Origin: Blepharisma stoltei ATCC 30299
Taxonomy: Eukaryota; Protista; Ciliophora
Direction: 5' to 3'
DNA length: 64,000 bases
NCBI GenBank assembly: GCA_965603825.1
Contig: CBFDEM010000015.1
Location: 496,001-560,000, forward strand
The position numbers were made by a program, and so were the translations under genes. Positions 43,037 to 56,300 of this stretch are shown one piece after another. Within the stretch, counting starts at the first letter, position 1; every line of letters begins with the position of its first letter. The notes beneath the pieces were generated by a model, which ran no database searches, had not been told where the DNA came from, and saw only the letters and a list, made by a program, of their open reading frames with translations.

Positions 43037-44791
43037 ATGCTTTTCACCTTGGCACGCTATTATTTGAAGTAATTCTAACTCAGACTTTTAGCTGCTTTTT
43101 TCTTCCAAGAAGTAGAAACAGTTGGGCGGCACTTGACTCCTTCGACTGGGCCTGTTATTTTGTGTGGAAACCACTCAAATCAATTTGTGGACCCAGTCTT
43201 GATCATTAGCCAATGCAAAAGACAACCATCGTTCCTGATGGCTGCCAGTGTAAGATTTATTTAGTCAATGAAAAAGAAAGTTGTAGGGTCGCTTGCCAGA
43301 CTGTTCCATGTAATCCCTGTGAAAAGGCCTCAAGATTATGTTACAAAAGGGACTGGAACAATTACTTATGATGACGATCTTAAAAGAATCATAGGAACTG
43401 GGACCAAATTTGTGACTGAAGTGCACCCAGGGGACGCCCTTAAGTGTGAAAAAGTCATGATCACTGTAAAATCTGTTGAAAACGACACTGTTGTTGTCCC
43501 TATGGGTCCAGCTATAGGGATTAAAGACATGCAGTTTAAGATCATGCCTAAAATAGACCAGCATGATATATATGAAGCTGTGCAGACTGAGCTCAGAAAA
43601 GGAGGGTGCATTGGGATATTCCCAGAAGGAGGCTCCCATGACAGGCCAAATTTATTGCCACTAAAGGCTGGAGTATGTTTAATGGCATTAGGAGCCATGT
43701 CAAGGTATAATATCACAGTCACAATTCAATGTGTTGGCTTGAATTATTATCAAGGGCACAGATTCAGATCTAAAGCAGTCGTCAATTTTGGAGTTCCTTA
43801 TGCGATTCCTAGAGAGCTTGCATCGCTCTATTTGCGAGATCGCAAAAGGGCTGTAGAAATCTTACTAAAACAAATTGAAAATGTAAAAGATATTTAGAGA
43901 CTTGGAGAAGTTTGGGTCACAGCGCCGACTTATGATGAGCTTTCTCATGTATTTATGGCAAGAAGAGTTTACAAGCCTGACCATCTTAGAGAAAACCCAG
44001 CTTTAGATATGGAAATGAATATAAAATTTGCAAAAGGATATAAAGAGCTAAAAGAAAAGTACTCAGATTTGCCTGACTTTAAGAATCTAGTGCAAATTGT
44101 TGAAGCTTATTCAAATAATTTGAAGAAAATTGGGCTGCAAGATTACCAGTTAAGGCTGTCGAATTTCTCTAAAGTAAAGATGATTGCTTATACTTTGATA
44201 ACCTTGATAAGGATTTTGGGTGGACTAACAATTTCTCTTCCTGGGTGGGTAATTGCAGGACTTATGGGTGCAATTTTGAACTATATTGCAGAAAAAGAAA
44301 GAAAAAAAGCTTTGATGTCTTCTTCAGTCAAGTTAAATGCAAGTGATACAGTTGCGTCAACGAAAATAGTATATGGGATGGTTCTCATGTTTCTTTTCAC
44401 ACTTTTCCTTCAGATTGTTGCTTTTATTTACACCTATTGTAAAATTTATGTAGATTTATATGGATCATTTTGGACTTCTCTAGAGTATCTCGCTATTACT
44501 GGCGTTGCATGGCCAATTTATATGTACCTAGCTATTATACTTTCAGATAGAGCTTTTAGCAGCTTTGGGAGGCTTTATTCAAGGGCTCTCAGTATTTGTA
44601 GTCCGAGGGAAATTGAGAATCTTAAGAGTCAAAGAGCTCAGCTAAAAGAGCATGTGGTTAAGCTAGTAAATGAGCATGGTCCTAAGATATTCCCAGGATT
44701 GCAGCCAGGGGATTTGTTTAAGGAGAAGGCCAATGATCTGGATGATATGCTGAATGGAGCTTTTAATTTATTGAATGAAATTGGACTCTAA
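43037..44791 (+). CDS. Glycerol-3-phosphate/DHAP acyltransferase (Sct1/Gpt2-like), 569 aa
   Basis: 15-nt introns 43069-43083, 43250-43264, 43883-43897. NHSNQFVDP (HX4D), IPVKRPQD, IFPEGGSHDR..LLPLKAG, C-terminal TMs. Confidence 0.9.
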
Positions 44792-44983
44792 AATAATCAT
44801 TATGATGCTTAAATATTTGGTAATAAATTTAAGTATTAAAAGTAATATGATATAATACATCTTGGTGCATAAATTAGCTATTGAAGTAGCCCAAGGGTTA
44901 TAATATCAGAATTTATAATTTATTTATTATGTCTGTTAAAAATATAATAAACTGCTACTTATTTATTAAATAATAACTTTATT

Positions 44984-47900
44984 TTATTTGCGCCTATTCC
45001 AAAATCCTCCACCTATATTTGCATTTGCCATTTTTGGAGCCTTCTTTGGTAATGTATTGCTCTTTTCTGAAGCTTGCTTATCTACTCTTGTAATATTTTT
45101 AGCTTCTTCTGCTTTTTTTCTTTCTTCTTTTTGCTTATTAATGGCGATAGCGTTAGAATTTGTTGCTTTTGGAGGTATTTTAGCTTCTTCTATGTGTTTT
45201 CTTTCTTCTTTTCTTCTACGAGTCGCGTTAGCGTCAATACTTACTTCTTTATATCCTAATTTTGGAGCCTCCACTTTTTCTATATTGCTTGATTTCTTTT
45301 CATCAGGGATTCTATTTTGATAACCTTGAGGAATTGTCGTATTTATTTTTTGCTCTTCATTGTTTCTTTCAAAAAAATCACTATAATAATGATATCCTCC
45401 ATCTCCTGGGTTTCCCCAATGTGGATCATAGTCAATAGTTATCAATTTTCTTTTGTCATTGCAGTAGTCTATGAAGTCATCTCAATCATCATTTTTCCTT
45501 AAACAACGAGCATTTCCTACTATACTCAATGCAAATCTAGCTCTGGTAATAGCTACATTCATTCTTCTTCTATCACTCAAAAATCCAATATTTTCAGATC
45601 TTACTAAAGAAAGTATGATATAGTCCTTTTCTCTTCCTTGGTATCCATCAACAGAGTCCACTTCAATTCTTTTCCTTCAGCTACCTCCAAATCTTTTTCC
45701 AAGCAATTTCTTTATATACTCAGCTTGCGCTCTATAAGGTGTTACTATACCTATCGATGATCCTCTCTCCCCAAGCAATTCATAAACGATATAATTTGCT
45801 TCACATTCGTTGTAAAAGCTATGCCCATCACTTGCCTGAATTTCAGTTGAATTTACTAAGTTAAAAAATCATAAACCAGGGTTCTTTATGCCAGGTGGCA
45901 TTTGTCTCCTATCAACACTAGGATCAGATTTTAGTTTGTGATCATAAAAATACATAGCAGGATACTCACAAAGCTCAGATATCATTCTATACTGTGTTTT
46001 AAGCATCAAAGGCTCAAGCTTGCAATCTTCCATCCTTTCAAATAGTGATCGGTTATATAGGTTAGTTTTCGAGGCATCTGCAAAAGTTGTTGCAGGGAGC
46101 TGCTTTGGATCACCAAATAAAATAGCAGTCGAAGTGTCATATAGAAAAGGAATTAAAATGCTAAGTTCAATGGATTGACATGCTTCATCAATAATAAGAT
46201 AGTCAAATTTTCTTATTGAAATTCCATTATCATCAGCTGTAAACGCAGCCAGAATATCCAGAGAGCCAGCTGTGCTTGCTGTGCAAAAAATAATATCTGA
46301 TTCATCAATATACTCTTTCTTCAGGGATTTTTGGCGCTCAATATATATATTCTTTTCATCATATAGCTGGTTCAACTCATCTAACAAAAGCTTAATATTT
46401 CTATTTAAGTTTTCATATTGTTCAACATTCTTATTTCCTTTTTTGGTCATTTGATCTCGTTCACCGCTCAATCTGTCTAATTTTATTCGCAGTTTTTTAA
46501 TTTCATCTGTAGGGTCTCTCAATCCTTCTTCTTCCATAGCTACTTCTATCAAGTAATTTAATGATATTTCTTTAACGCTTACAGGGATTTCTTTTGTATT
46601 AACATTTTCCACTATTCCTAACTCATTTTTTAATCTTTTTTGGCCAATTCTAAGCATTGGGATGCCTTGCAGCTGATCTCCATTTTCATCAAATAGTCCA
46701 TGGTTATGAGCTCTAGAGGCGATTTCGTCAATGGCTGCATTGCTGGGAGCACAAACTAAAATTTTTGGCCTTAAATAACGATCGATTGACAAATATCCTG
46801 AAATCAGACCAAGAATTACTGAAGTTTTTCCTGTTCCTGGGGGGCCTTGAACTAACAAAATCCCTTCATTAACACGAAATGAGTAATTAAGGACATCATA
46901 CTGCGATTGATTAAATTTATTTTTGATTGTTTTAAGAAAACGCTCTGAAACAATTGGATTTGATGATATTCTAGGTGGTTTAGGAAATAATATATAATCC
47001 AATAACAAAGAATCTTCAATCTTGCTAAAAGTCAAAAATTCTCTTCTGAGTGTGGTTAAGTTTCCAAGGCTCACTATCTAAAATTCTGCTCGAAATCGCC
47101 ACATTGCTGCGCTTTTATTGAAATCAAACCACCTCTGTGCTCTTTCCTTGCAATTCCTAATCAATATTTTGAACTTAATATCTCATCTGACATTTGAATA
47201 CCAGATCCACTATGAGGGAGTAGTAGAAGCAAGTCATTTGCCTGTATTTCATCATAAAATGTTTTAATAAAAGCACTTTCATTTGAATGCGAAACTTTAT
47301 AGCCTCCCGTATCTTCTTCCAAAATTAAATTGAAAACTTTGAATTTGTTTATATCTTTAATTTGCTTCTTAATAATTTCTTTCACCTCTAAAAAAAAAGC
47401 TGCCTTAAACTCTTCTTGATACTGATCAAAATTATCAAATTCATCTGAAATCTTTTTTGCTGGAGGAGGAGTTACAAAATCAACATCATTAAAATGCAAA
47501 ATAAAGTAATCTAGCTCTTGATATGGTTGAGTCTCAAACAAATTTATTATTTTTCTTCTTTTCCTAGACTGAACTTCTTCAAATTCAGATTCACTTTCTT
47601 CTTCTGTTCATCCAGAATCATCTGAATTACTGAATTCATCAACGCTTTCTTCTGATTTTTCATCTTCTATAGCTAATGGCTGGTTCTGGCCTTCAGAGTT
47701 TATTTCAACAAATTTATTTCTTATTCTATTTTCAATTTCTCCTTTAAAGTTATTCAATATTTGGGCTGCTGTTTTAAAGTCATCAGGATTCGAAACTTTT
47801 ATTTTATCTGGGTGTATTTTTAAAAGAATCCTATTTGCAATTTTTTTAACATTTTCGTCTGGCTCTTCAGCTTCAATATTTAAAGCTTCATAAATATCAT

Positions 47901-48339
47901 TAGCTTTTAATATTCGCTGGCATATATTTTGCCTTTCTTCATCAAGTTTTCTTTTATCTTCTGCTTTCTTTTTTGCCAACTCTTCACTTTCTCTTATTTT
48001 CCGCTCGTGCTCTTCCTTTCTTTCTTTTACACTATTTAACAATTGAAAATTTTCAGATGATGGTTGAATATTGCAAGCTTTGGTCAGGAAAGTTATAGAT
48101 TTCGCAAATTCATGGTTTTTTAAATATTTATTGGCAATATCAATGCATCTTTGAAGCTCAATGGCATCTTTTTCGGAAAGGCTATTTTCGGGTTCTCTAT
48201 TTTCAGAGCCATTATTTTCAGCATTTTCTGTGCTTTCAAAAACTTGATTTTCATTCAAATTAATCCTGTCTCCAGACAATTCTAAGTCGATTTTACGCTC
48301 ATCCTCTTCGTTAATATTTTCATGCTCGCTTTTTGACAT
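44984..48339 (-). pseudogene. J-domain/Sen1-like helicase fusion, copy A, with one frameshift near 47077
   Basis: HPD intact (47806-47814). A 1-nt deletion relative to copy B creates TAG 47074-47076. The downstream frame is otherwise open with all SF1 motifs to TAA 44984. Confidence 0.75.
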
Positions 48340-48728
48340 TTAACCAAAATTGTAAATTTTTCAGATTTCTCATTTTTCCAGAAATTCTTGGCAAATGCAA
48401 ATCGTAGAGCAACAGTATTATGCTATTTTATTTGAATCTGCATAAATAATAAAACCTAATTTATATGAAAAGATAGACTCACTAAGTTAAATCTGCAGCC
48501 GTGCAAAACTTGAACTCATCTATAAGCAATATATTCACTTAAGAAAATAATCATTAGATGAATTGGCTTTAAATCGTTATAATTTTAAAACAGCCTGAGA
48601 TACTTAATTTAAACGCAAAGTTAATTCAATAATTTTTATAACTTTTTAGTAATTCTCTTGATTTTTGAATGCTTGACTCTTGGACTGAATAAGATATAAA
48701 TTATTAACCAAATTGTATTTAATTTTCT

Positions 48729-49210
48729 GACTAACAATTTCTCTTCTTATGGGTGCAATTTTGAGCTAGATTGCAGAAAAAGAAAGAAAAAAAGTTTTAA
48801 TGTCTTCTTCAGTCAAGTTAAATGCAAGTGATACAGTTGCGTCAACGAAAATAGTATATGGGATGGTTCTCATGTTTCTTTTCACACTTTTCCTTCAAGT
48901 TATTGCGTGAATTTACACCTATTGTAAAATTTATGTAGATTTATATGGATCATTTTGGACTTCTCTAGAGTATCTCGCTATTACTGGCGTTACTTGGCCA
49001 ATTTATATGTACCTAGCTATTATACTTTCAGATAGAGCTTTTAGCAGCTTTGGGAGGCTTTATTCAAGGGCTCTCAGTATTTGTAGTCCGAGGGAAATTG
49101 AAAATCTTAAGAGTCAAAGAGCTCAGCAAAATGATCTAGATCCTAAGATATTCCCAGGATTGCAGCCAGGGGATTTGTTTAAGGAGAAAGCCAATGAAAT
49201 TAGACTCTAA
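48729..49210 (+). pseudogene. Duplicated 3' fragment of the GPAT gene
   Basis: Near-identical to 44223-44791 apart from net deletions of 21, 24 and 42 nt and an in-frame TAG at 48767-48769; lacks the catalytic domain. Confidence 0.85.
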
Positions 49211-49394
49211 AATAATCATTATAATGCTTAAATATTTGGTAATAAATTTAAATATTAAAAGTAATATGATATAATATACCTTGGAGCATAAGCTATAGAG
49301 GCAGCCCAAGGGTTTTAATATCAGATTTTATGATTTTTTTATCATATCTGTAAAAATATATAATAAGTTGCTATTCATTAAACAATTAATTTAT

Positions 49395-52300
49395 TTATTT
49401 ACGCCTATTCCAAAATCCTCCACCTATATTTGCATTTGTCATTTTTGGGATCTTCTTCGGCAATGTATTGCTCTTTGCTGAAGCTTGCTTATCTACTCTT
49501 GGAATATTTTTAGCTTCTTCTGCTTTTTTTCTTTCTTCTTTTTGCTTATTAATTGCGATAGTGTTAGTATTTGTTGCTTTTGGAGGTATTTTAGCTTCTT
49601 CTATGCGTTTTCTTTCTTCTTTTCTTCTACGAGTTACGTCAACGTCAATACTTACTTCTTTATATCCTAATTTTGGAGCCTCCACCTTCTCTATATTGCT
49701 TGATTTCTTTTCCTCAAGAATTTTATTTCCATAAGCTTGAGGAATTGTCGTATTTATTTTTTGCTCCTCATTGATTCTTTCAAAAAAATCACTATAATAA
49801 TGATATACTCCATCTCTTGGGTTTCCCCAATGTGGATCATAGTCAATAGTTATCAGTTTGCTTTTGCCATCGTAGTAGTCTATTAAGTCATCTCAATCAT
49901 TATTTTGCCTTAAACAACGAGCATTTCCTAAAATACTCAATGCAAACCTAGCTCTGGTAATAGCTACGTTCATTCTTCTTCTATCACTCAAAAATCCAAT
50001 ATTTTCAGATCTTACTAAAGAAAGTATGATATAGTCTTTTTCCCTTCCTTGGTATCCATCAACAGAGTCCACTTCAATTCTGTGCCTTCAGCTATCACCA
50101 AATCTATTCCCAAGCAATTTCTTTATATGCTCAGCTTGCGCTCTATAAGGTGTTATTATACCTATCGATAATCCTCTCGCCCTAAGCAATTCATAAACGA
50201 TATAATTTGCTTCATATTCGTTGTAAAAGCTATGCCCATCACTTGCCTGAGTTTCAATTGAATTTACTAAGTTAAAAAATCGTAAGCCTGGGTTCTTTAT
50301 GCCAGGTGGCATTTGTCTCCTATCAACACTAGGATCAGATTTTAGTTTGTTATCATAAAAATATGTAGCAGGATACTCACAAAGCTCAGATATCATTCTA
50401 TACTGTGTTTTAAGCATCAAAGGTTCAAACTTGCAATCTTCCATCCTTTCAAATAGTGATCGGTTATATCCGTTTGTTTTTGAGGCATCTGCAAAAGTTG
50501 TTGCCGGAAGCTGCTTTGGATCTCCAAATAAAATAACAGTCGAAGTATCATACAGAAAAGGGATTAAAATGTTAAGCTCAACAGATTGGCATGCTTCATC
50601 AATAATAAGAAAGTCAAATTTTCTTATTGAAATTCCATTATCATCAACTGCGAATGCAGACAGCATATCTAGAGAACCAGCCGTGCTTGATGTGCAAAAA
50701 ATAATATCCGATTCTCCGATATATTTTTTCTTCAATGATTTTTGACGCTCAATATATCTATTCTTTTCATCATATAGCTGATTCAGATTATCTTCCAAAA
50801 GGCTAAGGCTTCATTTTAAGTTTCTAAATTTTTCACCCTTCACATTTCCTTTTTTAGCCATTTCCTCTAGTTCACCACGCAAACTGTCGAATTCTATTAG
50901 TGTTTCTTTAATTTCATTTGTGGGGTCTCTCAATCCTTCTTCATTCAACGCTACTTCTATTATGTAATTTAATGAGATTTCTTTAACACTTACAGGGATT
51001 TCTTTTGTATTAACATTTTCCACTATTCCTAACTCATTTTTAAATCTTTTTTGGCCAATTCTAAGCATTGGAATATCTTGCAGCTGATCTCCATTTTCAT
51101 CAAATAGTCCATTGTTATGAGCTCTAGAGGCGATTTCGTCAATGGCTGCATTGCTGGGAGCACAAACTAAAATTTTTGGCCTTGAATAACGATCGATTGA
51201 CAAATATCCTGAAATCAGACCAAGAATTACTGAAGTTTTTCCTGTTCCTGGGGGGCCTTGAACTAACGAAATCCCTTCATTCATGCAAAATGAATAATAA
51301 AGGACTTCAAATTGTGATTGATTAAATTTATTCTTGATGGTATTAAGAAAACGCTCTGAGACAATTGGATTTGATAATATTCTTGGAGGTTTAGGAAATA
51401 ATATATAATCCAATAGCAAAGAATCTCCAGTCTTGCTAAAAATCAAAAATTCTCTTCTGAGTGTGGTTAAGTTTCCCAGGCTCACTATATTAAATTTCAG
51501 TTGAGAATTGCCACATTGCTGCGCTTTTATTGAAATCGAACCACTTTTGTTGTCTTTCCTTGCAATTCCTAATCAATAATTTGAAATTAATATCTCATCT
51601 GACATTTGAAACCCAAATCCACTATCAGGGAGTAGTAGCAGCAAATCATTTGCCTGTATTTCATCATAAAAATTTTTAGTTAAAACACTCTCATTTGAAT
51701 GCGAAACTTTATAGCCTCACCTTTCTTCTTCCAAAATAAAATCGTATACCTTGAATTTGTTTATATCTTTAATTTGTTTTTTAATAATTTCTTGCACTTC
51801 TAAAAAAAAAGCTGCTTTAAACTCTTCTTTATACTGATCAAAATTATCAAATTCATCTGAAATTTTTTTTATTTGAGGAGGAGCTTCAAGATTATATTGA
51901 TTAAAATTCAAAATAAAGTCATCTAACTCTTGATATGGTTGAGACTCAAAAAAATTTATTTTTTTCCCCTTTTTCTTTTTCTGAACTTCTTCAAATTTAA
52001 ATTCCCTTTCTTCTTCAGCTCATCCAGAATCATCTGAATTACTGAATTCATCAATGCTTTCTTCTGATTTTTCATCTTCTATAGCTAGTGGCTGGTTTTC
52101 TCGTTCATTCTGAGAGTTTATCTCAACAAATTTGATTTTTATTCTTCTTTCAAAGCCTTCTTTAAATCTATTCAACTTCTGGACTGCTGCTTTAAAATCG
52201 CCAGGATTCAAAACGCTTATTTTATTTGGGTCTATTTTTAAAAGAATCTCTCTCGTAATTTTTTTAACTTTTTTATCTGACTCTTCAGCCCCAATATTTA

Positions 52301-52757
52301 AAGCTTCATAAATATTTTTAGCTTTTAATATTCGCCGACATATATTTTGCCTTTCTTCATCAAGCTTTCTTTTATCTTCTGCTTTCTTTTTTGCCAGCTC
52401 TTCTTTTTCTCTTATTTTACGCTCGTGCTCTTCTTTTCTATCTTTTGCATTGTTTAACAACTGAAAGTGTGTAGATGATGGTTGAATATTGCAAACTTTG
52501 ACTAGGAAAGATATAGATTTCCCAAATTCATGGTTTTCTAAAGATTTATTGGCAATATCAATGCATCTTTGAAGCTCAATGGCATCTTTTTCGGAAAGAC
52601 TACTTTCGGCTTCTATATTAAAAGAGCCATTATTTTCAATATTTTCTCTGCTTTCAAAAACTTGATTTTTTTTCATATTAATCCTGCTTCCAGAGAATTC
52701 TAAGTCGCTATTACCCTCAGTCTCTTCTTTAATATTTTCATGTTTGCTTTTTGACAT
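49395..52757 (-). CDS. J-domain/Sen1-like helicase fusion, copy B, 1120 aa, HPD changed to DPN
   Basis: All track ORFs lie in one frame joined by TGA=[64 protein letters not shown]. Confidence 0.88.
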
Positions 52758-53108
52758 TTAGCCGAAATTGTAAAGTTCTCATTTTTCCCGAAATTCCTGA
52801 TAAATGTAAATTGTAGATTAGCAATTTTATCTTCATCTCATTAGAATGTGCATAAAAAATAAACCTAATTTATATAAAAAGATAGATCACTAATTTAAGT
52901 CCGCAGTAATGCGGTCTGAACTCATCTAAAAGCAACATATTCTCTTAAGATAATAATCATTAGAAGAATAAACGTTAAATAATTATATTTTAAAACAGTC
53001 TGATATTCTTAATTTAAACGCAAAGCTAATTCAATATTTTTACTACTCTTTAGCTAACTCTCTTGATTTTTGAATGCTTGACTCTTGGACTACATAAGAA
53101 ATAAATTA

Positions 53109-56100
53109 TTAACCAAATTTTTTTCTTTTGCCTGAACTTCCGATAGAAGACTCTGTTTTCTCTTCAATATTATTATATCCTTCCTTTAATAATTGATTTT
53201 CACCACTTATATTAAACTCAATTCTTTTACGATTCCTATCAATCGAAATTTTATTTTCAAGCTCTAATTGATTCCAATACGATTGTTTTCCATCATAATC
53301 CGAATGAATAAGCTTATTTTTGCTATCACAAAACTCAATAAAATTATCCCAATCATCATTTTTCTTCAAACTTAAAGCATTCCCCACAATATGAAGCCCA
53401 AACTTAGCCCTTGTTATTGCTACATTCATTCTCCTTATATCTTTAAGAAATCCAATATTCCCAGTAACTAAATCTGACCTAACCAGCGACAAAATAATAA
53501 AATCTTTTTCTCTTCCTTGGTATCCATCAACAGAGTCTACTTCAATTCTCTCCCTTCAGTCATCCTGAAATTTTTCATCAAGGAGTTTTGTCAAATATTC
53601 AACCTGTTTCCTATAAGGAGTAATTATGCCTACATTTTTTGCATATTCTCCAATTATTTTTTTTACAATATATTTAGCTTCAATTTCATTATAATAGCTA
53701 TAATCGTGCTGATTACTTATTTCTTGAGATCTTGTAAGGTTAATAAAAAGAAGACCAAGCGGCCTGATACCTAGTGGAGCTTGTCGTGAGTCTACTGAAG
53801 GATGAGATTTTAATAAATGATCATAAAAATACATGCTGGGGTATTGGCATAATTCTTTGCTCATCCTATACTGTACTTTTAAAATTTGAGGAGAAATTCT
53901 GCAGTCAATGAATCTTTCAAACATTGACCGATTGTATTTATTTACCTTTGAGGTTTCTGAAAATGTGGTTGCTGGTAATTGTTTATGATCACCAAATAAG
54001 ATCACTGTAGAAGTGTCATATAAAAATGGGATTAGCATGTTCAGCTCAATGCATTGGCAAGCTTCATCTATAATTAAATAGTCAAACCGTCGTGGAGATA
54101 TTCTATTTTTAGAGTTTGAAAATGCAGAAAGCATGTCTGCTGACCCAGCAGTGCTCGTTGTACAAAAGATGACATCTGCAGCCTGTATCAAATCTTTTCT
54201 GCTTTTCTTTTTGTTTTCGTGATAGTCTTTTTGCTCTTCTTTTAAGTACTCTATATCTTCAAGAACGTCTTCTCGCTTTTTGACTAATTTCTCGTATTTT
54301 TTTATGTCAGCAGTTCCCTTTTTCAGCATATTTTCTAGTTCTTCTGCTAATTTTTGCTCTTCTTTGACTTTTTCTTTAATTTTTTTTGCTTGGTCATGAA
54401 ACCCAATATCATTTAGATCTTTTTCACTTAAATAATTTAGAGAAATTTTCTTGACATTTGTGGGGATATCTTTGACATTAATATCCTCAATAATTCCTAA
54501 TTCGTTTTTAAATCTTTTTTGCCCAATTCTTAATAGATTTATTTTAGATACAGGATTACCATCTTCATCAAAAATCTGATTTTTATTGGCGCGAGATGCT
54601 ATTTCATCAATAGCAGCATTGCTTGGAGCGCAAACCAAAATTTTTGGTTTTGTTAGTGAGTTTGAAGATCAATATCCAGATATAAGCCCCATTATTGTAG
54701 ATGTTTTTCCTGTTCCTGGAGGGCCTTGAATAAGCAGTATGCCTTCTTTTATACTAAAAGCATTTAATAAAGCCTCATACTGTCCTTGGTTAAATTTTTT
54801 TTTAATCACATTCAAAAATCTCTCAGAAACAATTGTATTACAAATATTTGGAGGCTTTGGGCTTAAAATATGATCTAGAAGTAGCGCATCTTTTATTTTT
54901 GTAAACGTTAAAAATTCTCTTCTTAATGTCGTTAAATTTCCGATGCTAATAACACAATATTGAATATTTGGATCATCCTCAAGCAATGACAATATTTTAA
55001 CATTATTATCATTTGGGTTCTTTTTCGCAATGCCTAGGTTAAATGATGATTGTTTTAAATCATATTGATTTTCTATATAACTATAATCTTCAATATCACA
55101 TATAAATAGAAGATCGTTCGCTTGTATTTCTAAAGAAAATTCTTCTACAGTGAATCTTGTGCACTCTGGTGAAAGCACAAAATAATCATCAGTAAGCACA
55201 AAATTAACAAAGTATTCTTTTCCAGTGAACAGTCCATTGATTGCTTTAAGAATGATTTCATGGAGTTCTACAAAATAAGCAGCCTTAAGCTTAGCTATAT
55301 AATCATTAGCGTCTATAAATTCATTTGGTATCTCTTCAGAGGTTGGACTCCTAAAGAATTCACTATTAGAAAATTGTAAAATATAGTCTTCAAGTTCTTC
55401 ATAGACATTAACATCTTCTTCATATGGAGATTTTTCAGATGCTTGGGCCTCATTTTTTATTATGCACGACCCATGAAAGCGGGCGCTTTTTGGAATTCTT
55501 TGTGTATTTCTCGTGTTGATATCAATATCTTCATCAGAGCTATAACTATCATCTGAGATATCACTTTCTTCTGGTTTTTCATATTTTTTCAAAACAGTCT
55601 CCTCTTCCTTCGTCTCTTCTTTTTGCTCTTCTTCAACTAGATTTTCTGTTGTCTCTTGTTTCTTTTCTAATGTATCTTTGAGAGATATCAAAATTTGAGT
55701 AGCTTCTTGTGCGCTTGGTGCAAGATTTTTATCTGGATGTAAAATCCTTAAGAATTTTTTGATTGTCCTAATAATGTCTTCATCTGAAGAGCTCTCATCA
55801 ACTCCTAAGGTTTCATTTAAACTAGAAGGATTAATAATTTGCTTGCATAAATTTTCATTTGCCTCAATAATTTTTTGTTTTTTTAATTTTTCAGTTTCAT
55901 CTTCAAGCAGTTTTTTGATTACTTCTTCTTTTTTCATCTGTATTTCATTTAGCAATGATAAGCTTTCAGGAGAAGGATTCAGTTGTAGCGCTTTATTAGA
56001 AAAAATAAGTGCTCTATCAAATTCCCTTTTTTCAAGATACTTTTTTGCTATATTTAAACATCTATCAACTTCAGCTTTTATTTTTTCTGGTATCTGGCGC

Positions 56101-56300
56101 TGATTAATAGCATTTTCAGATTTATTTATGGGTAAGGCATTATTGAGAGCATCACTATTCTGTTCTGCTATTTTTACATTTTCTGGAGTTTCTGGTTGAT
56201 TAGAGCTAACAGATGCCCCAAACTCAAAGCTTGTCTTTTTTCATTTAGATTTTTTAGACTTTCTTTGCCCAGGAGCTGCTTTATTATTAGCACTCTCCAT
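53109..56300 (-). CDS. J-domain/Sen1-like helicase fusion, copy C, 1063 aa, HPD intact
   Basis: ATG 56300. [34 protein letters not shown] hairpin; [28 protein letters not shown]-domain; full SF1B helicase motifs; three TGA=W; TAA 53109. Confidence 0.9.

Follow-up and report, generated by a model that had tools for sequence, protein, structure and literature searches.

Several class C J-proteins of ribonucleoprotein (RNP) machines, such as Cwc23/DNAJC17 with Prp43, Jjj1/DNAJC21 and zuotin, bring a J-domain, and sometimes Hsp70, to RNPs that undergo remodelling. To our knowledge, these proteins act in trans and none of them is fused to a helicase. The polyomavirus large T antigen, a viral hexameric SF3 DNA helicase that is unrelated to SF1B enzymes and has an unrelated J lineage, offers an analogy for the proteins described here, as it combines an N-terminal J-domain, a disordered linker and a helicase in the same layout within one chain. 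The J-domain of large T antigen binds Hsc70 (PMC11720896).

The Blepharisma stoltei fusion analysed here resembles two cellular families, one in each half. With Sen1/senataxin (SETX) it shares the entire helicase core with its N-terminal brace region, all the motifs and its grouping in the tree; it differs in its TPR hairpin and J-domain N-terminus, in the lack of SEN1_N and in belonging to a fast-evolving expansion restricted to Blepharisma. With the ER J-proteins DNAJB12 and DNAJB14 it shares the hairpin and J-domain, in the same order and spacing, and the HPDK-x-x-AP-S loop. Unlike these proteins, the fusion has no G/F region, transmembrane helix or DUF1977, and the positions that are near-invariant across the DNAJB12/14 family (Y, L, Y, F and K, together with helix IV) are altered. 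The fusion can be classed both as a Sen1/SETX paralogue and as a J-protein similar to class C.

Results

The window, that is, the whole stretch of DNA analysed, comprises 64,000 nt of B. stoltei ATCC 30299 contig CBFDEM010000015.1; the assembly contains 64 contigs and 41.46 Mb in all, and its proteins correspond to NCBI entries for B. stoltei. The locus, at positions 44984–56300 of the window, was found on record CAJZBQ010000015 of assembly GCA_914767885.1. The B. stoltei genome paper reports a MAC of 41 Mb, introns of 15–16 nt and UGA encoding tryptophan (10.1101/2021.12.14.471607). Within the locus we identified three co-oriented minus-strand copies (A, B and C), all of which combine an N-terminal hairpin and a J-like region with an acidic linker and SF1B motifs. 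The assignment of UGA to tryptophan, on which an earlier sequence-only reading relied, was upheld because in-frame TGAs of the locus genes align with tryptophan columns of standard-code SETX homologues. The same reading described three single genes, each with a J-domain; the three co-oriented copies were confirmed, but copy A is frameshifted and copy B has no HPD motif. NCBI gene models agree, with 1,063 aa for copy C, 1,120 aa for copy B and two genes of 421 and 557 aa for the split copy A. Copy C is the sole intact J-domain and helicase gene of the three.

Copy C (53109–56300, minus strand) is a single 1,063-codon ORF under table 4, encoding 1,063 aa, intronless in the MAC sequence and containing three UGA-Trp codons. 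A TPR-like helical hairpin (residues 77–125; 55926–56072), homologous to the N-terminal hairpin of DNAJB12/14, is followed by an atypical three-helix J-domain (residues 149–212; 55665–55856) with the HPD motif at 55731–55739, an acidic low-complexity linker (residues 216–296; 55413–55655) and the Sen1/SETX helicase core (residues 297–990; 53331–55412), the fold of which was assessed with a model of copy B. Walker A lies at 54702–54725, motif II at 54054–54068 and motif VI at 53406–53432, all features being on the minus strand. The region from the hairpin through the J-domain to Walker A spans 522 codons and is also open under the standard code, so the join between J-domain and helicase in copy C is independent of the choice of code. 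Motif III reads GDHKQL in copy C versus GDPKQL in copies A and B. No transmembrane stretch was found in the fusion protein.

Copies A and B were produced by a 4.46-kb tandem duplication with 88% identity (44261–53119, not assigned to a strand; 44261–48714 versus 48746–53119), and the end of the adjacent acyltransferase gene was duplicated along with them. A decayed 3' fragment of this gene occupies 48746–49220 on the plus strand, in an area where NCBI calls a 136-aa gene. Copy B (49395–52757, minus strand; 1,120 aa), matched to BSTOLATCC_MAC6427 by gene length and contig, retains an intact helicase; its HPD motif is changed to DPN (approximately 52224–52232, within IDPNK) and it gave no Pfam DnaJ match. 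Copy A is one base shorter than copy B near 47080–47094, which splits it into an N-terminal half of 421 codons (47074–48339, minus strand), retaining HPD at approximately 47814 and stopping right after the lost base, and a helicase half of 697 codons in a different frame (44984–47077, minus strand). The first methionine of the latter follows Walker A, and its model is MAC6424 (557 aa). A single GT-AG intron candidate of 29 nt from 47102 would restore the frame of copy A and was judged unlikely: the usual length is 15–16 nt, its removal would delete approximately nine conserved residues and it is uncalled in the RNA-based annotation. Between A and B the dN/dS of the J-domain was 0.88 (70 codons) versus 0.30–0.33 for the RecA cores. 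In B. stoltei, copy C would be the working copy, with A and B as a young duplicate pair in which the J-domain appears to be decaying.

The helicase half contains the SF1B core motifs I, Ia, II, III, V and VI (AAA_11 and AAA_12). Among solved structures searched with phmmer, yeast Sen1 was closest to copy B (E 1e-64), with Upf1 at E 3e-52. The model of the copy B helicase (pLDDT 88) superimposed on yeast Sen1 and Chaetomium SETX with Z scores of 31–33 (best 32.9), compared with 26–27 for Upf1 (best 27.3). This model aligns from its residue 5, to Sen1 residues ~1,102–1,110, and so covers the brace region, which precedes the stalk and barrel, whereas Upf1 aligns from residue 22–37 only. Overall, the copy B helicase is nearer to Sen1/SETX than to Upf1, IGHMBP2, Dna2, Aquarius or ZNFX1. 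In a quick tree, the J-bearing helicases grouped as a single clade (SH-aLRT 99) with a four-gene array on contig C47 as their sister (97), and the fusion and this array were nested in SETX paralogues found only in Blepharisma (SH-aLRT 99), apart from Stentor proteins. Sequence, fold and tree thus agree on the Sen1/SETX-type helicase that had been proposed.

The sister array (C47:158000–170600; L020–L023) is a tandem array of four SETX paralogues, three of which start with Met-Gly, a possible myristoylation signal. Two of its members look split in the assembly, and all are conjugation-induced, with ratios of 7–50. A basic N-terminal motif common to the fusion and this clade was not significant against shuffles. 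The genome also encodes a second, fast-evolving Upf1 paralogue (C30:592600–595200; L030:2647–5211) that keeps a CH-like N-terminus and has DDA, not DEA, as motif II.

SEN1_N (PF12726) gave no match on copy B, in the genome (a search run without a positive control) or in the heterotrich helicase homologues that were found. The hairpin and J module was sought in 120 helicase homologues, where nothing but copy B itself matched. The earlier reading contrasted this module with the large helical N-domain of Sen1, but a displacement of such a domain is not visible: the N-termini of the remaining SETX paralogues in this genome are of low complexity and carry no HPD.

Within the same genome, the N-terminal module is matched most closely by a 351-aa gene on contig C52; this gene encodes the hairpin, DnaJ, a transmembrane stretch and DUF1977, and is thus a DNAJB12/14. 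The module of copy C is 34% identical to this protein over 128 aa (E 7e-14), bearing out the DNAJB12/14 origin put forward earlier. A phmmer search with the module against 1.84 billion representatives returned 270 matches. Those spanning both hairpin and J-domain were mostly proteins of 320–460 aa, and most of those scanned carry DnaJ and DUF1977. A helicase domain was found in none of the best 150 of the 270 matches, one of which is a UGA-truncated piece of the second-species orthologue described below. The homology of the fusion module to its donor stops at helix III, so the capture did not include the G/F region, the membrane anchor or DUF1977. By sequence comparison, we consider the module to be derived from DNAJB12/14 and the fusion protein not to be a member of that family. 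A second DNAJB12-like gene of the genome (C47:435600–436400; L037) has no N-terminal hairpin.

Against the Pfam DnaJ cut-off of 27.8 bits, copy C scored 24.4 bits (E 3e-5) as protein and 27.7 bits in the genome scan, copy A 22.8 bits and the orthologue fragment 16.6 bits. The HPD motif lies between helices II and III in copies C and A and in the orthologue. A structure model of the orthologue module shows a J fold with helices I–III and HPD in the loop, together with a TPR hairpin of the co-chaperone type. J-domains were the best matches of the J model (Z 9.3 and 9.1; 9.3 against the J-domain of DNAJC27, rmsd 2.8 over 75 residues), although the model was built on a DNAJB12-rich alignment and leans to the J fold, a Z of 9.3 is modest for a helical domain and the Foldseek E-values were not significant. 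The J-domain named in the sequence-only reading is therefore below the profile cut-off even in copy C, but has a match in the modelled fold.

Three-helix J-domains such as that of Pam18/Tim14 work without equivalents of Tyr25 and Phe47 or helix IV. In copy C and the orthologue, the basic helix II and the Lys26, Arg/Lys36 and Leu57 positions (DnaJ numbering) are kept, whereas Tyr25 is changed to Ile/Leu, Phe47 to Thr and Lys48 to Gln, and helix IV is lost. Changes of Tyr25 and Phe47 impair DnaJ function in bacterial tests, whereas E. coli DnaJ is reported to do without helix IV (PMC1906734). Apart from its HPD loop, the J-domain of the fusion is degenerate, which makes stimulation of Hsp70 plausible only.

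We identified an orthologue of the fusion in a second species, on a contig of run SRR24908292. Under table 4 it forms one single-copy ORF of 997 aa with the hairpin, HPD-bearing J-domain, acidic linker and helicase, and it has the same four neighbours (DHHC, Rab-like, ankyrin kinase and a 269-aa gene; 59–88% identical in their best segments). Based on UGA=Trp, a GC content of 33.5% and synteny, the second species is probably another Blepharisma. The helicase is followed on this contig by a different open frame (L040:10247–11041), in the place that copies B and A and the acyltransferase occupy in B. stoltei, and synteny ends on this side. In the tree, the orthologue branches below C, A and B, so the fusion is older than the species split and the triplication came later: the fusion arose a single time, in the lineage ancestral to both species. 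The idea of a lineage-specific chimera is borne out. The homologue searches were non-exhaustive, so this distribution over two species is a lower bound; further orthologues were not found in word-limited searches that also missed known copies (C was absent), a weak negative.

Synonymous sites are nearly saturated between the orthologue and copy C. Identity is 61–62% in the RecA cores and 49% over the helicase, compared with 22–26% for hairpin, coil and linker (hairpin 22%). Within the module, the HPD loop and helix III reach 55% (16/29) against 24% (36/151) in the flanks, which indicates that this segment is under constraint (Fisher test, p = 0.0014 against the hairpin, coil and linker flanks and p = 0.006 against all non-RecA parts, for a segment that is short, at 29 residues, and was picked from prior knowledge of J-domains).

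Expression values were taken from Data S3 of the genome paper, with copy B identified as MAC6427 by contig and its length of 3,363 bp. Copy B rose from 0.15–0.33 to ~2 RPKM and was flat from 2 h (ratio 8.2); the helicase half of copy A had a similar profile at a lower level, and reads of A and B may cross-map. Many long genes near a ratio of 6.26 show a similar jump at 2 h. The row expected for copy C (g1469) was not among the top ~1,740 of 14,819 rows (ratio at least 6.26). MAC2096, a J-less SETX of 3,102 bp that corresponds by length to the paralogue at C5:280400–283500 (L024:3398–6535), rose from 1.3 to 139 RPKM (ratio 82) and ranks 78 among development-induced genes. MAC18803, a J-less SETX of 2,628 bp in the C47 array, had a ratio of 50. 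A development-specific SEN1 paralogue is known from Oxytricha (PMC5312943), and the MAC2096 paralogue is the better candidate for a role in development of the new MAC. With A and B at ~2 RPKM and the strongly induced SETX paralogues J-less, the genome-rearrangement role suggested for the fusion is unsupported; such a role suits the J-less paralogues better.

We also scanned 79 metagenome helicase loci for J-domains, with the human-gut-labelled contig L108 left out of computed comparisons, and identified one 757-aa ORF that joins a canonical J-domain to a Upf1-type helicase. The J-Upf1 fusion is present in two metagenome assemblies (L054:2472–4772, the same as L123:2872–5145, and L122:10001–12295; P0282 and P0283). 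The J-domain of the 757-aa protein scores 83 bits, is nearest to DNAJA1 and has helix IV, and its helicase matches UPF1 with E 1e-100; a CH domain was not detected in this protein. A short helical segment after the J-domain resembles, by eye, a SAP/ARMET-type motif. In the second assembly, a relative of 764 aa is flanked upstream by the same neighbours, so the fusion is not a misassembly. The host of J-Upf1 is a gene-dense, intron-poor eukaryote using the standard code; of the genes next to J-Upf1, one falls in a cluster with an MMETSP transcript and one has 52% identity to Blepharisma, and our guess is that the host may be a heterotrich ciliate.

Like the Blepharisma fusion, J-Upf1 comes from a gene-dense protist and is encoded by one intronless ORF that places a J-domain N-terminal to an SF1B helicase. 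It differs in its canonical DNAJA-like J-domain with helix IV, its Upf1-derived helicase and its standard code. The tree places it with Upf1 (99) and sets it apart from the Blepharisma clade by several well-supported branches; the two fusions are of separate origin. Literature searches found no paper on a J-domain joined to SETX or to Upf1, and an atlas search for the architecture returned separate helicase and DnaJ clusters, all below 0.9. The view that the architecture is undescribed thus agrees with the literature searches, but the combination of J-domain and SF1B helicase is not unique to Blepharisma, as J-Upf1 exists.

Discussion

In our reading, a soluble Sen1/SETX paralogue captured the cytosolic front end, TPR hairpin and J-domain, of the ER co-chaperone DNAJB12/14. 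Based on its family membership and intact motifs, the fusion is predicted to have helicase activity; it would bind single-stranded RNA or DNA and move 5' to 3' with ATP. The tethered J-domain would present its HPD loop to cytosolic or nuclear Hsp70 and trigger Hsp70 on proteins beside the helicase, which would help to strip a ribonucleoprotein or transcription complex. The fusion would be a low-abundance specialist and not the main developmental SETX.

On a fine balance, we favour this specialist SETX that brings Hsp70 to an RNP or transcription complex under remodelling. It is supported by the donor in the same genome, the syntenic HPD-bearing orthologue, the constraint on the HPD loop and the modelled J fold, and further by the kept helix II, Lys26, Arg/Lys36 and Leu57 positions, the identity of the helicase, the lack of a transmembrane stretch, the J-Upf1 fusion and the large T precedent. 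We counted against it the changes at Tyr25, Phe47 and Lys48 with the loss of helix IV, the sub-cut-off Pfam scores and the DNAJB12-biased model with its non-significant Foldseek values, as well as the loss of HPD in copy B, the J-domain dN/dS of A and B, the distribution over two species and the short, preselected segment. That the J module stimulates Hsp70, with either a substrate or the helicase itself as the target, is the broader claim and one we regard as probable.

A less likely but substantial alternative is that the module now serves simply for interaction or targeting, as a J-like pseudo-co-chaperone that docks the helicase on a partner or binds Hsp70 without stimulating it, with the HPD loop serving a structural or binding role. 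The Tyr25, Phe47 and helix IV equivalents are lost in both species, copy B, which lacks HPD, still has an open and expressed helicase, and the sister clade carries other N-termini (the three Met-Gly starts among them), a swap suggesting that this sub-family varies its targeting ends. A docking role fits less well with conservation that is highest at the HPD loop and helix III and not in the hairpin, and the precedents of E. coli DnaJ and Pam18/Tim14 weaken the argument from the missing helix IV and Phe47.

It is unlikely that the J-domain works in cis, with Hsp70 folding, releasing or switching the helicase itself, for example under stress. The 80-residue acidic linker could fold back on the RNA channel, and the J-domain is placed where Upf1 has its regulatory CH domain, which it replaces in J-Upf1; J-less paralogues of the same clade exist, however. 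Even less probable is a near-neutral chimera in a birth-and-death family, with selection acting on the helicase while the N-terminal module erodes slowly as a passenger. Fast evolution (the helicase being 49% identical between orthologues versus 59–88% for neighbouring genes), the lesions in A and B, the split copies in the sister array and low expression would fit such a family, but HPD and helix III are kept at saturated synonymous distance, and hairpin and J-domain are still recognisable. A conjugation-specific role, in small-RNA scanning or in removing nascent transcripts while IESs are excised, is very improbable: A and B do rise ~8-fold after pairing, and Oxytricha provides a developmental SEN1 precedent, but their plateau of ~2 RPKM, the expected copy C row below a ratio of 6.3 and the far stronger induction of J-less paralogues speak against it.

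Returning to a helicase that brings Hsp70 to its substrate, we tentatively suggest that protists may have repeatedly joined an Hsp70-activating J-domain to Upf1-like RNA helicases, such that a translocating helicase would deliver Hsp70 to dismantle RNPs or transcription complexes. If true, it would represent a recurring design, and other eukaryotes may achieve the same coupling in trans, as gene fusions often reveal partnerships found in trans elsewhere. From the two independent fusions of a J-domain to an SF1B helicase, it is predicted that Sen1/SETX and Upf1 work together with Hsp70 to strip protein from RNA. This prediction can be tested directly, as the HPD switch lies within a single polypeptide. 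The locus also provides a natural series, with intact (copy C and the orthologue), HPD-less (copy B) and cut (copy A) forms. The reach of these findings is narrowed for now by a distribution over two species and by the low expression of A and B.

The MAC+IES record shows insertions in copies C and B at 55751–55791, 55131, 54825, 54600, 53180, 52702 and 49805. The insertion inside the J-domain of copy C coincides with 40 MAC bases that do not align to this record.
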